A DNA stretch of 63,778 nt, filler included, from Reticulomyxa filosa (Eukaryota; Protista; Foraminifera): NCBI GenBank assembly GCA_000512085.1. It is 27 parts of 27 records of this genome, joined end to end, with 100 filler letters (N's around TTAATTAATTAA, not from the genome) between each part and the next. Parts side by side here need not be neighbours in the genome. Positions count along the whole stretch, not along the records: positions 39,554 to 48,026 come from ASPP01009030.1; 26 more parts are not named here. One strand, written 5' to 3'. A model generated the notes under the pieces. The model had not been told where the DNA came from and ran no database searches. It saw nothing but the letters and a program-made list of their open reading frames with translations. Below, piece by piece: positions 38,800 through 48,126 of this stretch. Both the position numbers and the translations under genes were made by a program. How positions within the stretch are numbered: position 1 is the stretch's first letter; every line of letters begins with the position of its first letter.

Positions 38800-40686
38800 A
38801 TGCATTCAATCTCCCGCGCAAAAGCTTTCAAAAACATTGTATTAATTTTTTGACGACATGCTTCTACCCTTTTTTCAATTGGAAAGAATGTTAATTAATA
38901 TAATGCAAAAGAAAGTTGATATCTAAAACGACAACTTATAGAGATGATTGATTTTCTTAATAAAGAAACAATATTAAATTTTTTAAAAATATCTATGAAT
39001 CTTGTAGTTTTTAAATATGATTTTGATTTTAGTTTTTTAAATCTTTACTAACTGTTTCAAAAATTTGAATATTTTATTGATTTTTCAAAATTTTGGAGAA
39101 AAGTTCAATCGTGATTGTATCGCAACATGAACGAAAATTTGTTAAAAAATGCGTTAAAAATAACCATTAAGAGTTAAAAAAAACGAAGTAAGTAATTTTA
39201 TGTTAAGAATAAATACAATCAGAAAAATATGATCTTTGGATGTTATATAAATAATCATTCAATCCAACCTTGTCAGTGACCAACAGATAGACGATCTTAC
39301 AAGCAGATTTTGTCATTTTTGTTTTGATCCATAATGCTTTGCAAGTCGTTGTTCATGATATTTCTTTTGCTCAATTTTGTCGTATTGCAGATAATTGTCT
39401 TTATGGCTTGCACAAACATTGTTTTGCGAGCGATTGTTCGCGCCACCATATATNNNNNNNNNNNNNNNNNNNNNNNNNNNNNNNNNNNNNNNNNNNNTTA
39501 ATTAATTAANNNNNNNNNNNNNNNNNNNNNNNNNNNNNNNNNNNNNNNNNNNNGTATTGCGGTTTTTTTTGCAATCTACTGTATTGGTGAATTATACATC
39601 ATTTCCAAGCGAAACAAGAAGAAATTTACAAACAAATACGAAAGGGACTAATAGTTTGAAGTCTTATGTAATGCCAAAATTAATTGTTGAATCATCTGTA
39701 GATTCATTATTGTCATTGCCAAAGGCACCAATAATCTTTGGCTGAGCACTGTTTAACCTTCCCCCACAATCAGCATGTTGCCAGGAAAAGAGTTACTATC
39801 TCAATTACCATGAACTTGTAAATCTGTACTCTTAAAGCAACTAATGTCAATACGCTGTAATTTTAAACAAGTACTCCCATCTCTCACAGTTACATACCAC
39901 ACTAGATGCTGAACCGACGACGAAGCCACTCAAAAATAAATTGTAATAAAAACGTTGCCAAAAAGAATAACAAAAGTGAAAATTTACAATCACTTAACAA
40001 TATCTCAACCACTATAAAAAATCTTTCTAGTTAAAAAAATTTGTTTTCTCTTGCTTTCTTTCTTGACTTCTTTGCGTTGTTCAGGTACTTTTCTTTGCAT
40101 ACTTGGTCAGAATCTTGAAGAAAATTCTTGCTTGTATCTCAATGATTTTTTTCAAATAAAACCTTCAAAACTTGAAGTATGTTGAAGTATCTTGCTACTT
40201 TCAACTTAAATCTCTTTCAAAATACATTTTTTCAGTATTAATGATGAAGTGTGTTAATATTAATTTTTTTTTTCATTAGCAAATGTAATATTATTTCTTT
40301 ATTGTTATTTTATTGTGTTAAATTTTCATGTTTTTTTATATGTAAAACATTTGTTTTTTTATATTTGTTTTCATCATTTGTTGTCTTGATGCAAAGTAAT
40401 GAAATGGCATCTGAGTTGGTAAAGTATTACGTTTAATGCATTTCAATGTATTAAAAAAAAGTAACAAAAGAAAATCAAAACTGCACAACGAAAGAAAAAT
40501 TGAAGCAATATTGCCAATCACAAGATAAGTTTGTTCCATTATTTGATAATCCTGGATAATGTGTTGATTCAATTGGCTCTTTTGATCCAAAAATAAAAAT
40601 AAAAAAGAATAACAAACTAGCCTAAATATTTAATTGCTAGCGATTGTATTCTAAATTTTTTGAAAAGGTGCCTACGAGAGGGAAAA

Positions 40687-41676
40687 ATGGCGGTCGGTAT
40701 TGCTCGTTCATGTGCCAAAAATCGATTTCGATTTTCGCTATTGTTATGCCTCGCTTTCATAGGAGGTTTAATATTGGCAATTCTTTCTTTGATGCAAATG
40801 ACCGGTCAAGGAAAGACGTCAAACGGAAAGAAATGGTCAGAACGGTGCAACGAAGAAGAGACATTGCAATTCGTGACTCCTTTTCGAGCGCAGTTGCAAG
40901 ATGGTTCGTATATAAGCTGCCCTTGGCCAATGATGGATACGATATTTCGCACCACGCTGAGTTTTTCCGTCCCTGTGTTAGTAGTGACATTGCTGGTGAC
41001 ATTGCGAAAGCTATACTGGACAGCATCATGGATTTTGTGTCGTTACGCAATGTTAGTGTGCAGTGGCAGTGCATTTGCAGTATTTGTCTTGGACTGCGAG
41101 CACCTGCGAACAGGATTTACACTTTGTAATAAAAATTTCAAAATTGATGGTACCCAAGTTACGTTTCAAACAAAAAAAAGGGGGGAGATGATAAAATGCA
41201 TAGTACGCATAGTTGGAACATTGGAATGTACCATATTGTGCATATATGCATATGTATATGTATATATGTGTATGTATGCATAGATAATCCAAACCAATTC
41301 GAAAATCGAAAAATGTTGGCTGACACCACATATATGGACGATATTCGTGGACATAATATTGTTCTTTTTGCTGACGTGGACATATCTGACGATGCAGTTT
41401 TATCCTTACTTTGGGGTGACAAGTGACTACAAGAGTAAAAAAGATTTGGAGAGGGTGCCGGATCATGAACCACATGATGATAAGACACAGGCACAAAAGA
41501 CACGCAGCAAAAGCTCCTTCAATGGTGCCCCAATCAAATCCTCTGAGGATGAAGAAGAGGAGGACAAAAATGTTGATAAAACTTTGCTTACTGCCCAAGG
41601 CGGACAACAAAGCGATGAGACCGAACCTGAACATTGGAAATTCTCCAATGCACAGCCAGGAGCATATGATCATTGA
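40687..41676 (+). CDS. Four-TM membrane protein with Cys-containing loops, 2 exons
   Basis: Exon 1 to ~41157 (3 TM); exon 2 from ~41284 (KCWLTPHIWTIFVDIILFFLLTW...) with a charged tail. Confidence 0.7.
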
Positions 41677-42487
41677 ACATGCTTCTACTTGCATAATATA
41701 ATAATATCCGTAATTTTAAAATACATTTATATACGTTACTATCATCACTAAGGGAAAAAAGGTTCAACTAAAAATCTTTAGATGATAAACACCAACCATT
41801 TTGTTTTCAAACAGTTTTACAATTATTCAAAGAGTATAGAGATTGTGTTATATTTATCTATCTATTTTGGTTTATTTTAACTTATACAAAGTGTATCGTA
41901 CAGCCCACTTAAGGTACCAATACTATGCTGAGCGAAGCACTCAGCATCTGGATCCTCTTTTTTTGCTTTACACTCAAAGGTATCTGCTTTACTGTAGTCA
42001 GGGCAATACAACACATAAATGCGTAGCATAGTCATATTTTTTCTATATTACTTTTTTTCAAAAGATTCCGAACAGCGTGCAGACAAGCCTACATACTGAC
42101 GAAGTTCTTTTCTCGAAAACTTTCTTCAATTTTTCTTTTTTTTCTGTTCTTTTTTGATTATTTTTGTTGATATTGAAATTTGCTCAAAAGAGCAAAGATA
42201 TTAGTATCACACATTTCTGCTACAACACTTCCAACTGAAAAGTACACTCAACCGGAGAGGATGCTAGTTGAAGAAAAGAATGAATTAATATCAAATAAGA
42301 TTTACTAAGCTCTTGTTTGCCGAAAAAGAGTTTTTATTAATGTTAAATTTATATGAAACTACAATAACCTGACATCCCTCATTGAGTAAAAATAATTACG
42401 AAGTCGAAACTTCGAACATGCAATTTGTTAAAGAAAATCTGAATGGCCACATCAGAAAAATAAAAAATTAGAAATAAGTATACAACT

Positions 42488-42615
42488 TTGGGACATCTGC
42501 TGTTGATAAGAGATTACACTAAATGTAATACGAAAAGTTTTACTCAAAAAGAGATATGTTTTCGATAAAACAAAAGTAAATGAAAGATGAACAACACAAT
42601 AAAAGATTACAAAAA
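42488..42615. mobile_element. Truncated copy of the same LTR family
   Basis: ACTAAATGTAATACGAAA, TTACTC, AAAGTAAA and CAACACAATAAA blocks are colinear with the other copies. Confidence 0.55.
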
Positions 42616-42775
42616 AAGAATTAATGATACAATAGTCCAAATGAAAAAAATACAATTAACAGACAGTAAGTTGTTGAAAAATGAGTTGACAAGGTGTCAA
42701 AACAACTTAGGGAAAAAAGCTTCCAAATTCTGTTGTGACTGTTGACAATACAACAAGTCAAAAGAAAAAGCATCA

Positions 42776-45700
42776 ATGAGCACTCATCATGATTCCAGTA
42801 GTGATAATGCGCCAAAGCATGCTAATGTAAGTTCCTTTGAATATCGGAATCAGTTGTTCTTAGCCTCGGAATACGTGCGTTCGCAACTTGGAAGTGCGTC
42901 TATTGCCATAGTATTGGGAAGTGGACTGGGAGGATTTGAAGACCAGTTACAAAATAGGAAAGAGTTGCCTTACGAGCAAATTCCATATTTGCCATTGCCA
43001 ACGGTGAAAGGGCATAGTGGCAAGATTATCATTGGAGACGTTGTGTCAAAGGATGGCAAAAAATCGCGTCGAATCTTGTGTTTTTCAGGAAGGTCACACG
43101 CGTATGAAGTTTTGAACCAATTTGCCTTTGTTTTCTTCCTTTTCTCAGTTTTCTGTCTTTTTTATCCCATTGCGATTTTTTTTAAAAAAGGGTTGTCCGA
43201 TGCATCAAGTGGTATTTTGCACGAGATTGGCATACTTGGTCGGATGCCACACGTTGATATTAACGAACAGCAGTGGAGGATGTATCCCGCATCAAAGGCC
43301 AGGGAGCGTGGTGATAGTAACGGATTACATTCGTAATGTGCAGTACAAAGTGTTACAGCATTCTGCAAGCGATGGGACTTTGGAGTACGACATCCCCGAG
43401 GAGATCGGTTGTTGGACCCCACGCTTATCTCTTTGATGGGCAAAGTGGCCGAAGAGGTGAAATTCCCTTACTACTTTGGAAACTACTTCTGGAGCCCTGG
43501 TCCTGTTTATGAGTCAGCCGCACAAGTACGGTTCGCTATGGCGTGTGGCGCAGCTGCCGTTGGTACAACAAATATGAATACATACACAAACCATACAAAA
43601 AAACATTAAGAAAGAAAAAATGAATAAATAAATAAAAATAAATTTATTTATTTATTTTTATTTATTCATTCATTTTTTCTTTCTTAATGTTAATGCATAC
43701 GTACATAAGCTAACACTTAGTTAGTTAATTATTAAAAAAAGTGAATGAGATGTACATACATCTACAAATGTAATATATTTGCGACGGTACACCCCAAATT
43801 GTTTGTGTGTGTGATGTAAATGAAACCAATAACAAAGGGATGTCAACAGTGCCAGAGATCTTGGCGTCGGCCAATCTTGGCATGCGCACAGCGGCCTTGG
43901 CATTGTGCACGAATGTGGCAGCAGGCTTAGCAGACGAAGAGTTGAGCCACGAAGTGGTGGTAGCGAATGCCAAGTTGGTGTCGAAGGCGTTTGGCCAGTT
44001 TGTGTCAGAAAGCTTGTTGCGTATTGAAGACCCCAAAGAAGACTTTGTCCATCCCTTGCGTCGATCGTGGCACAATGTTCTTACCAAAGAGTTTGTGCAA
44101 ATGGCACCCTTACTCCATTCCTCTAAATTCAAAAAGAAAAGAGCTCATAAATACTTTTATCCAGTTCGTGTTTGATCTACTTTGTCTGTTATTTGTTTGT
44201 TGCTATTGTGTATTGTAGCAATGTTTGAAATAAACACGTACATTGCATTTCTTTGTGTTGGAATATATATATATACCCAGTTGAGTCATGATTTAATGGA
44301 CTGGTCTGGCGAAGTGTATATACGACACAATTTGCTCGTATACCGCGACTTGTTTAAAGACATTGAATACCTTGGCCTGCTGACGAAACAGCTGTTGAAC
44401 ACGTCTGAGTTGACCAACCGCAATGGCCCAATCCCAATCTGGACCATCCACGAACCTTTCCGATTTGACGTCGGAAAATGGTTCGACTGTCCGTTGTCTT
44501 TCCCCTTACTGAAACTTCCAGGTTTCGGAACCATTGCCTCCAGCACCAGCTCAAAGCGTGCTGCTTTGACCTTTGGACTTTATCAAGATGCTTTAGTCAT
44601 TTTGTTGACTGATTTGCATGTTATTATTATATCTTTTTATTCATTTATTTGTTTATATATATCCTTTTTTTTTAATCCAGTTACAATGTGGTTGTGTCAC
44701 AGTTGGATGGGCTAAGCTTCGACGAATACAATTATTTAATCAATTTATTGCATGGTGTGATTGGACACCAAAATTTGCACTTTTTGAACTTATTTATGGC
44801 GTTTAACGCTAGTCACATCTATGACACTGCCGAGTCGGCGAAAAAAGACCAAAAGAAGAGCAAAGAGGAACAAAAGGAAGAAAAACAAGACACGAAAAAG
44901 AAAGTGTCGGCACATGTATTTGCAGCTGTGAATGATTATGTAGACTTTCAGGGAGGCATCCCACGCTTTCCATTTCCTTTGTTCCCACCCAAAGGCACCA
45001 GCGGCGCTGATCATGAAGAGAAAAAAGACTCAAAGACACCAGAGTTGCATTTCTCTTTTGCCTTAGGAGCTAGTGAGTCCAAAACATCATCCAATTTGGC
45101 CAGTTTTATTCTCTTCTTGCTGACATCGTTGAGAGTCTATCTATGTTTCATCTTTTTTTTCCCCCTCTTTCTTCGTTTTCATTTTTCATATTTGTGTGTT
45201 TGGATTTGCGATAAATCAAATGCAATATCATCGAAATGAAAAGAACGGAGGCAAGGCAGATGCTGTTGGATATGCCTGGTGGGCAGGCCCTCAATTGCCA
45301 TCCAAGACCGAAGTGGCGATCAGTGAGAAGGCATTTTGTGAACTGATAGGAGTGACCAATCCCGAGTTGCCAACATTGGCCCGACAGCTTGGACATCACG
45401 GCTACAACATTGCATTTATTGCGGATAGCGAGGACTTGGAACATATTTCCTCTGTCGAAATGATGCAAGAGTCTTCACATGACCTTTACGACGCTTCTTT
45501 GTTCGTCAATCAACTGTCCCTCAGCATCGTGGAAAAGTTTGCCACCACGAAAAATGATTCTTCTATTGTCAAATCTCAAGACTTGCAAGTTCTCAAAGAT
45601 TTGACCTTCCCGTCTAATATCCCAGCCTATCAAGTTTATGCAAGATTATATTTTATTTTCGATCATATACATATACATGTATATATATGTATATATTGTG

Positions 45701-46975
45701 TACATATGTGTACAATGCATCTTTTTTTTTTTGATTCATGACCATAGACAATATTTGAGGTGGACGCGGAATGGGAGGCTATCAGTCATGCTTCCGAGTG
45801 GATCCGGAAACAGTGGGACTTTGATGACAAATCCAAAAAGATTGAGAGTGTGTTGGTGTCACACTTTGCGCATCCGTTCTTGTACCACAAAGAAAACAAC
45901 AGCACTGAAGAGTTGTCAATCAATATGGCGCAAATTCCTGGGTTTTTGGATCACCGTTGTGGTGGTGTTGCGTACACATATTTCCATTATCACAACGACA
46001 ACCCATTGGAGTGGACGCTCAAATTCTATAAAAACCATCAAGATACAAGCAAATACTATGCTGTCATTGCTCCTTATTGGCTTGTGAAACATGATCAAGA
46101 CGCCTTGAAACAGTTTGGGCTTCTTTTTCTCTTATCCCTGTTTTATGTGTTTGTATGGGTATATGGAATGTCTACGAAGGGTACGCATATTCGATAAATT
46201 TTTTTATAAAAAAAAAGTCAATTATATGGTAAAGACTTTGCATCAACAACAAAGAAGGCAAATTCTTATGACCAGGCGCTGCACAACTTTTACAAGTATG
46301 CACCATCGTTATGGAACTTACACTTTTTCATCCGAGTCCTGTGGAAATGTGGAATCCGAAATGTGGTGTTTTTAGCCCAATTGTTTGGAACTGACAATGA
46401 AAAATTCAAATTGCCATCTGAAAATGGAGTAGTTTTGGTTTCCAATTATGTCGATGTTTCCCGCTGGAATTCTTTGACTGGTCCAAATGATGACCGCATG
46501 GGTCCGAGATTCGTCCCAATCACAGAACCTATGGATGGAAACAATGCGTTAAGTGAAATTGCCAAACGAAAGAAATTCGGATCAATTACGTTGCCACAAG
46601 TTGAAGTCGTCCAAACTCCATCTCAAGGCATAATCTCTCCGTTGACCAAAAAATTTCATGCATCTTTGGGACTTCAAGTTACTGTTTGCATTTTGATTTT
46701 TATGTGATGTGGATTCAGCTTAATTTGTTCGAAATTTCTTGTTTATTAAAAAAATCATTGCGACGAATGCACGCTCTATGTGCTTGGTGCTTTTGTGAAA
46801 ATAGACCGTTGTCAGTGGTTTAGTCCCGTCCATCGAAATTGCTCAACACGTTGGGTTGAAAAAAGCTATTATTGGTGTTGTTGACCACCAGCCACTTGCA
46901 CCTCTTGCTCTTGTGAAGTCCTTTGAGAACGTTTTGCAAATTATTGAAACTTCTTTTGCAGAATTCACCAAATGA
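42776..46975 (+). CDS. PNP: Triple-domain purine nucleoside phosphorylase (one intact + two degenerate PNP domains), 9 exons, ~1,060 aa
   Basis: Exons 42776-43108, 43191-43562, 43838-44163, 44281-44619, 44703-45134, 45244-45633, 45748-46112, 46218-46677 and 46805-46975 are all GT-AG and phase-compatible. One base is missing at the G-run 43374-43376. Domain 1 has GSGLG, GH, GRSHAYEG, TNSSGG, GPVYES, GMSTVPE and TNVAAG. Confidence 0.85.
43602..43691. repeat. Near-perfect inverted repeat (~42-bp arms) in PNP intron 2
   Basis: AACATTAAGAAAGAAAAAATGAAT... pairs with ...ATTCATTTTTTCTTTCTTAATGTT, one mismatch. Confidence 0.85.
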
Positions 46976-48126
46976 GATGCAAAGGACAATATATGATAAA
47001 ACAAAATACAACATTTGTTGATTTGTTTATAAATTTACGACATTTAAAATGACGTTTGTGAATTAGTACTTTTTTTACAAATGATTTTTTCGGTGGCATC
47101 TTCGTACATTATATTAGTAAAAAGATCAGTAGTTATTTTTTTTTCTTGTTCATACTTTTAAAAATAAACGCAGTCATAAAATATTTAATTATGTTATACG
47201 TGAAAAATAAAAGGTATTTAGAATATAATAGAAATCCAATAGATACTAATTTTCACTTGCAAGAATTCATATTGTTATTATTTCGTTGTCTATACGAATG
47301 CAAGATGAATACGATAAATATGAATACGTGTACACATATTTTTTAAATACTTTTTTATTTAGTTGGCCTAAAATGAAAAGAACATTTTGTGTGTCAATAT
47401 GGCAGACAAAATACACATCATTAAAGTAATAATATATATTTCTTTTTCAAATCATTGATATTTTTTTTTATTAAGAAAATTTATAATGTTTGTTTGTAGA
47501 TGTTTTTTAGCATTTAAGTGTTTTTTTTTTCATTTATGGTGACGTCAATATGTCACCAAGAAACAACGACATATTTAAGTTATATTTACTTCTATTTTCA
47601 TTATTTATTTTTTACTTGATACTATTCATTTGTGTCAACGAAGAAAGCAAAGATAGCAATAACAAAATAAAAAACCTTTTTGAATTAGATTCATGTAATC
47701 TTTTTTAGAAGAATGTTTTCCTGATTTTACATAAAAGGAAACAAGTTATTATTGCAAGTTGCTCAAACAATCATATAGTCAGGATTTATTACTAGTATAA
47801 GTAAAGGTAGTATTGATTATATATGTTTGAAATATTATTTGAAGATATATAAGATATATTATAATATATAAAAATATGCATACAGTATGTTGCAAAGAAA
47901 ACTGAACGCCTAAAACATATCTTATGATGATAATTGATTTTATCAATGAAAAATCAACATTTATACCTAATTTTTTTTTTATAAGTCTTGTAGTTTTTAA
48001 ATATGATATTGATTTTTAATAACTTTNNNNNNNNNNNNNNNNNNNNNNNNNNNNNNNNNNNNNNNNNNNNTTAATTAATTAANNNNNNNNNNNNNNNNNN
48101 NNNNNNNNNNNNNNNNNNNNNNNNNN

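Follow-up and report, generated by a model that had tools for sequence, protein, structure and literature searches.

The window analysed here is a stretch of 63,778 nucleotides (nt), filler included, joined from 27 parts of a Reticulomyxa filosa assembly. One of these parts (positions 39554-48026, 35% G+C) carries on its plus strand a gene related to purine nucleoside phosphorylase (PNP), which spans positions 42776-46975 and consists of nine exons with about 1,060 codons. Its predicted product is a single chain with three PNP-like domains; the first has kept the catalytic residues of the enzyme, the second and third have lost them. We consider it probable that the gene is one member of a conserved family in protists, with proteins of roughly 1,000-1,200 amino acids (aa) in which three domains of the trimeric NP-I type, only one of them live, are joined in one chain and pack in a trimer-like manner, and that the gaps in the reading frame of the window copy are likely to be assembly errors.

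The layout of the gene is given in Table 1. All eight introns are bounded by GT..AG and measure 82-275 nt, with donors that start with GTT in seven of the eight. The junction between exons 2 and 3 is in phase 1 (g|gg). Intron 3 has a length divisible by three and lies in phase 0 on both flanks. The fused reading of the window copy depends on splicing it out: if it is retained, an in-frame TGA at 44173-44175, which begins 10 nt beyond the proposed donor and is in frame with domain 1, terminates the protein after domain 1. The preliminary description of this locus gave nine phase-compatible exons and ~1,060 aa. The number of exons and the length stand, but the phases close only with two added bases, as the exons sum to 3,181 nt and the frame closes at 3,183 nt (1,060 codons and the stop). 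Every motif that it quoted was found again, at colinear positions. The window exons were used one by one in the searches reported below, and the full-length analyses were made on natural orthologues. The ten exon pieces of the window gene align colinearly along the proteins of the full-length relatives.

Table 1. Exons, motifs and the intron between domains 1 and 2 in the PNP gene of the window. Residue numbers refer to PNP.
Feature	Positions	Exon	Strand	Remarks
Exon 1	42776-43108	1	+	N-terminal portion of domain 1; ATG at 42776
GSGLGG	42917-42934	1	+	Ser33 site
VKGHSG		1	+	His64 equivalent
GRSHAYE	43088-43108	1	+	Arg84, His86, Tyr88 and Glu89 equivalents
Exon 2	43191-43562	2	+	Middle of domain 1
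TNSSGG	43263-43280	2	+	Asn115 equivalent
FGVRH	43379-43393	2	+	His at the Phe159 position
GPVYES	43499-43516	2	+	Tyr replaces Phe200; Glu201 retained
Exon 3	43838-44163	3	+	C-terminal portion of domain 1, then linker
GMSTVPE		3	+	Met219/Ser220 equivalents
CTNVAAG		3	+	Thr242/Asn243 equivalents
LSHEVV		3	+	His257 equivalent
Intron 3	44164-44280		+	117 nt, gttcgt...acccag
Exon 4	44281-44619	4	+	N-terminal portion of domain 2; N-terminal helix, ends LTDLH
IHEPFRFD		4	+	Replaces GSGLG of PNP in domain 2
Exon 5	44703-45127	5	+	Middle of domain 2; includes Lys/Glu-rich insert
LDGLSFDE, VNDYVDF, GGIPRFPFP		5	+	Domain 2 motifs
MAFNAS		5	+	Replaces TNAAGG of PNP
Exon 6	45244-45633	6	+	C-terminal portion of domain 2, then linker
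WWAGPQLPSKTE		6	+	Phe200 to Leu, Glu201 to Pro (GPQLPS)
IGVTNPE		6	+	Met219/Ser220 lost (GVTNP for GMST)
FIADSE		6	+	Thr242/Asn243 lost (IAD for ITN)
Exon 7	45748-46112	7	+	N-terminal portion of domain 3; phase-2 donor at 46113
VSHFAHP, then DHRCGG		7	+	VSHFAHP replaces GSGLG in domain 3
Exon 8	46218-46677	8	+	Middle of domain 3
FYKYAP		8	+	Replaces H.YEG of PNP
AQLFGT		8	+	Replaces TNAAGG of PNP
NSLTGPNDDRMGPRF	46468-46512	8	+	Intact Phe159 loop of domain 3
Exon 9	46805-46975	9	+	C-terminal portion of domain 3; TGA at 46973-46975
VVSGLVPS		9	+	Replaces VGMST of PNP
GVVDHQ		9	+	Replaces TN (VVD for ITN)

Domain 1 can be recognized as a PNP piece by piece. Its four pieces match the NCBIfam model PRK08202 in order, at profile positions 8-88, 91-143, 150-211 and 212-271, with expectation values (E) from 6e-19 to 2e-7. 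The first of these matches is made by exon 1 (E 5.8e-19) and the last by exon 3 (E 2.1e-12), and the same pieces likewise match PF01048 and TIGR01697 in order. Single exon pieces are too short for a cut-off set on whole proteins; with the full orthologue P0020 the score is 250 bits, above the family cut-off of 197. By inspection of its motifs against the list of active-site residues in PMC9916683, domain 1 is catalytically complete, including the equivalents of Glu201 and Asn243, as the preliminary description had it. It differs from PNP in the replacement of Ala116 and Ala117 by Ser in the window copy and in the absence of the NPL.GPN...G.RF loop, where the window copy reads KVLQHSAS..DFGVRH. 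In the model of an orthologue this domain superposes on human PNP with a Z-score of 29 and a root-mean-square deviation (rmsd) of 2.5 Å over 274 residues. Glu201 and Asn243 together form the signature of a 6-oxopurine enzyme. On the strength of its retained residues for phosphate, ribose and a 6-oxopurine base, domain 1 is expected to carry out phosphorolysis of inosine and guanosine.

The two remaining domains present a very different picture. In every lineage domains 2 and 3 are without the GSG serine, Arg84, His86, the TNAAGG turn, Glu201, Met219/Ser220 and Asn243, as judged from an alignment bridged by less degenerate relatives. In the window copy, equivalents of Arg84 and His86 are absent from domain 2, and that of Glu201 from domain 3. 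Pairwise BLASTP among the ten exon pieces gave no significant internal repeat; it takes profiles, of PNP or of the orthologues, or folds to recognize the repeats. Three matches to PF01048 had been expected, yet Pfam sees nothing in domains 2 and 3, whether in the window exons or in the full-length foraminiferal orthologues, and recognizes domain 1 alone. An ESM Atlas feature search with domains 2 and 3 returned only sub-threshold PNP-like bacterial clusters (score 0.83).

For domain 2 the link to PNP comes mainly from orthologues and from structure. Exon 4 alone had no family match in the profile searches and aligns with domain 2 of all orthologues, while exon 6 gave weak colinear matches only (MTAP, E 0.0098; the PNP 6tk9 as best PDB match, E 0.44). 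A profile built from the orthologous domains 2 gave 35 matches in the PDB, every one of them to a PNP, the best at 6.2e-4 and covering the last third. An AlphaFold2 model of domain 2 from the orthologue P0026 (residues 346-725), made with a 17-row alignment, reached a predicted local distance difference test score (pLDDT) of 73.8 and a predicted template modelling score (pTM) of 0.79. The 50 best listed Foldseek matches of this model are all trimeric-type PNPs (E 7.5e-13, template modelling score ~0.65). In an unbiased VIA-align scan against 48,161 chains the PNP 4uc0 came first (Z 17.3, rmsd 3.2 Å, 233 of 247 residues), followed at ranks 2-20 by other NP-I family enzymes.

Domain 3 is matched by more direct means. 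Exon 8 alone finds TIGR01700 (E 5.7e-8) and solved PNPs (1.5e-5), exons 7 and 9 align with domain 3 and the C-termini of the orthologues, and the domain-3 orthologue profile retrieves only PNP and xanthosine phosphorylase from the PDB (best 4.4e-9, ~175 positions). With hhalign, domain 3 aligns with domain 1 at E 1.5e-4 over 147 columns; domain 2 aligns weakly with domains 1 and 3 (E 0.2 and 0.07), at equivalent positions. This homology, together with the succession of secondary-structure elements in the full-length model, leads us to infer that domain 3 has the NP-I fold.

The loss of catalytic residues has not been accompanied by decay. Compared over 697 codons with the R. filosa contig ASPP01020340.1, domains 2 and 3 show a proportion of non-synonymous differences (pN) of 0.23 and of synonymous differences (pS) of 0.71, the latter saturated, with a ratio of the corresponding rates (dN/dS) of about 0.13 or less. 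By this measure the two domains are under purifying selection and are not decaying. As their catalytic residues are lost, their fold is kept and selection still acts on them, we regard both as pseudoenzyme domains. They had been described as pseudoenzymes that retain the NP-I fold, and the residue losses, the profiles and the domain-2 model agree with this.

In relatives, translation yields all three domains in a single chain, and we infer the same for the window copy. Searching 1.84 billion representatives with exon 8 returned 19 proteins, eight of them strong. Full-length peptides are available from Ammonia sp. MMETSP1384 (1,184 aa, an EukProt/MMETSP entry) and Bolivina argentea (1,156 aa, EukProt), both of which begin with a start Met and extend across the three domains, and there are three environmental full-length proteins of 1,049-1,168 aa. 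A metagenome contig (L001) has an uninterrupted open reading frame (ORF) of 2,883 nt that covers most of domain 1 and then domains 2 and 3. The N-terminus of domain 1 is encoded there by a separate upstream ORF (1154-1450), which breaks after HAYE as window exon 1 does, and the next ORF starts from 1594. Further uninterrupted ORFs lead from domain 1 into domain 2 (P0061, P0062 and P0063) and from domain 2 into domain 3 (P0059, P0060, P0022 and P0002). The relatives have no stop at the position that corresponds to intron 3. Across both junctions, then, peptides and ORFs of relatives bear out, for the family, the original suggestion of one chain with three PNP-fold domains.

For domains 2 and 3 the closest named relative is R. 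filosa RFI_23488 (ETO13881.1, 705 aa), which is 69% identical to the window over exon 8. Exon boundaries are largely common to the two genes. A difference is that contig ASPP01020340.1 has no counterpart of the 105-nt window intron at 46113-46217 and reads straight across, so the intron was either gained or lost between these relatives. The model RFI_23488 is incomplete: its contig (L002, 1-2720) stops 117 nt before domain 2, and the model leaves out the exon 4 segment encoding ...LTFGL...LL..L, runs into the last intron and omits the final exon, although the DNA of exon 9 is conserved in the contig.

A more distant relative is found in Acanthamoeba castellanii (ELR17270.1 / XP_004339283.1, 853 aa, with a fuller Logan version of 955 aa). 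It shares the order of the three domains, the live domain 1 and dead domains 2 and 3, a Phe159 loop that is present only in domain 3, and an FLPRKH linker motif after domain 1. Foraminiferal profiles of domains 1, 2 and 3 each match the corresponding Acanthamoeba domain. It differs in its divergence, with ~37% identity across a stretch that makes up ~25% of the Ammonia query and corresponds roughly to domain 1 (representative P0027), and in the lesser degeneration of its second and third domains, such that Pfam finds three PF01048 stretches. The protein is annotated 'purine nucleoside phosphorylase' by name only, and a literature search found no paper on its architecture. The preliminary description had looked to Rhizaria for further cases. 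The architecture does occur in foraminifera, but it is also present outside Rhizaria, in A. castellanii, and so on the evidence of these sequences it is not confined to that group. We also note two Logan proteins, P0050 (840 aa) and P0052 (935 aa), that are three-domain, PNP-like and more divergent than the Acanthamoeba protein; their domain 3 keeps G.RFPD. Two further proteins have two PF01048 stretches, against three in the Acanthamoeba protein.

In a tree of the separate domains, these group by position and not by organism. The tree requires two label changes, which is the minimum and was reached in none of 200 shuffles. Support in the Shimodaira-Hasegawa-like approximate likelihood ratio test was 97 for domain 1, 97 for foraminiferal and Acanthamoeba domain 2 together, and 68 for domain 3, in a tree with several long branches. 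A tandem triplication had been put forward for the origin of the protein. The triplication is old and not a recent event, because the repeats no longer align with one another in pairs and because, in foraminifera as in Acanthamoeba, they cluster by position.

We now turn to the two single-base breaks in the frame of the window copy. In exon 2 (domain 1) the frame needs an extra base somewhere in 43371-43378, and in exon 5 (domain 2) it needs another in 45108-45112. In exon 2, ...KVLQHSAS(D) and (W)DFGVRH... read in different frames, and the two halves nonetheless match the PNP profile consecutively (91-143 and 150-211). A tblastn search with the orthologue P0063 places the frame switch between 43373 and 43379, with 5 nt left for two residues, and all orthologues read HSANDQMFGVRH unbroken across this point. 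A 26-nt GT..AG intron at 43333-43358 would also mend the frame of exon 2. We rejected it, as it removes RNVQYKVLQ, a stretch that all orthologues conserve (DYIRDV.Y.VL.HS) and that fits the PNP profile. In exon 5, ...NLASF lies in one frame and LLADI, before the donor, in another. The DNA alignment with contig ASPP01020340.1 has a 1-nt gap on the window side at this break, and the donor GACATC|GTTGAG is common to both sequences (GACAT[C/T]|GTT[G/A]AGA). An in-frame donor at 45073 with an acceptor at 45251 may be an alternative splice for exon 5, and its use would remove the second break.

If both gaps were genuine, the family would be real but the window copy would be a dead gene, its protein truncated inside domain 1. 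Both breaks are, after all, present in the sequence as given, and orthologues read through both. Points against a dead gene are the absence of stop codons across ~1,060 codons, the GT..AG boundaries retained at all eight introns, and a divergence from the R. filosa contig that indicates strong constraint. The second break, moreover, vanishes with the alternative splice just described, and both breaks amount to missing single bases beside short one-base runs. Lost bases at such runs are a typical error of long-read assembly. We therefore find a dead copy doubtful, and the two gaps more likely to be assembly errors than real breaks.

The next question is how the three domains of one chain are arranged. 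In PNP, neighbouring subunits act as a scaffold for stability and activity; the mammalian enzyme is active only as a trimer, in which the neighbours stiffen the site, and Phe159 is the sole residue contributed by the neighbouring subunit (PMC9916683). The preliminary description went further and had the active sites completed by a neighbouring subunit. This is stronger than the literature, in which the contribution is Phe159 only and the activity of human PNP is not significantly changed by Phe159Ala (PMC9916683). Across the family, the Phe159 position is occupied in every domain 1 by His, Tyr, Arg, Gln or Lys, and in every domain 3 by Phe, within an invariant GPND.R.GPRF. With the Phe159 loop gone from domain 1 but strictly retained by domain 3, this pattern suggests a closed intramolecular pseudo-trimer. 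In such a ring, the three domains would pack against each other like the three subunits of the PNP trimer, and the two dead domains would be the scaffold that a PNP active site requires. The live site of domain 1 would be covered by domain 3 and receive from it the intact Phe159 loop, and domain 1's own loop would face a dead site.

The domains could instead share a chain and form no intramolecular pseudo-trimer, either as three stacked homotrimers of like domains or as independent beads with other roles. Canonical PNP domains do form homotrimers, the full-length model has no confident packing between domains (pTM 0.44), and several orthologues have long low-complexity linkers between domains. 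That said, a like neighbour would have to lend a Phe159 that domain 1 has lost in every lineage examined, and like-with-like trimers would predict the opposite of the invariant loop that is kept by the dead domain 3. We consider such an arrangement unlikely.

Several points do weigh against the reading that we prefer, a live domain 1 enclosed by two dead domains of the same chain. The Phe159Ala result makes the loop a weaker argument. In domain 2 the Arg is likewise followed by a residue that is aromatic or hydrophobic, for which a simple donor model has no need. The full-length model, with a pLDDT of 61 besides its low pTM, supports no particular domain packing. The similarity of domain 2 to PNP is marginal in the window sequence itself, and the frame of this copy is, as the sequence stands, interrupted at two single bases. 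With these points in mind, our judgement is evenly balanced on the fuller proposal, that an ancient protein common to at least two supergroups of eukaryotes, Amoebozoa and Rhizaria, is a natural single-chain PNP trimer, with a single surviving active site, the dead domains as an obligatory scaffold and domain 3 as the supplier of the Phe159 loop.

That the locus holds three separate genes, a working PNP that ends at the TGA at 44173 and then one or two decayed tandem duplicates, fits the in-frame stop 10 nt after the proposed donor of intron 3 and an ATG at 44296, with RFI_23488 starting at the equivalent Met, but is very improbable and is contradicted for the family by the uninterrupted ORFs and full-length peptides over the domain junction and by the purifying selection on domains 2 and 3. 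The start of RFI_23488 at that ATG is due solely to the end of its contig, which lies 117 nt before this Met. Furthermore, nucleotide conservation with the contig begins exactly at the AG|TTGAGTCA acceptor (44281), 15 nt upstream of the ATG, and nothing is alignable upstream of 44281.

Some other features of this part of the window, and of PNP fusions in general, were recorded along the way. Intron 2 contains at 43602-43691 a near-perfect hairpin, whose two 42-nt A/T-rich arms are 98% complementary and 6 nt apart; a foldback element or a small insertion of palindromic sequence could account for it. The ORFs 40684-41172 and 41347-41676, on the plus strand upstream of the PNP gene, probably form a single gene of two exons, whose product would have a hydrophobic N-terminal part and a tail that is acidic and rich in Ser and Glu. 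Neither has a match in Pfam. Other fusions of PNP were seen among long proteins (P0028-P0047, P0049, P0051 and P0053-P0058), on precomputed Pfam labels only. Examples are fusions with phosphopentomutase (660 aa, Clostridia), a CNT nucleoside transporter, a GTPase and isoleucyl-tRNA synthetase.

If the single-chain trimer is borne out, the family would show which parts of a PNP subunit serve catalysis and which serve scaffolding only. Studies of communication between subunits, a matter that has long been debated for this enzyme, would also gain an asymmetric PNP that exists ready-made and has a single site per molecule. More generally, the protein would be the fossil of an obligate homo-oligomer that was fused and then made asymmetric, and it enlarges the small group of pseudoenzyme domains that trace back to an internal duplication within an oligomeric enzyme. 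In practical terms, the gene model of R. filosa can be corrected, and Pfam is flagged as seeing only the first domain in the foraminiferal proteins.

The preliminary description knew of no described example, and our full-text literature search likewise turned up no publication on a PNP that is multi-domain or pseudo-trimeric. The sequences are already public, one of them under the name of PNP; the architecture and its reading appear to be undescribed in the literature searched. The system with which it is best compared is the trimeric PNP of human and calf (PF01048, TIGR01697/TIGR01700). With this enzyme the protein shares the fold and active-site residues in domain 1 and the NP-I fold in domains 2 and 3, and the count of domains in its chain equals the count of subunits in the trimer. 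It differs in being one chain of ~1,060 aa where PNP has three chains of ~290 aa, in keeping only one of three sites intact, and in having a domain 1 without Phe159 and the NPL.GPN loop. Finally, the three domains are held together by conserved linkers, FPRK...LY.DI and SPA.MNR...PQY, that set the family apart from trimeric PNP.

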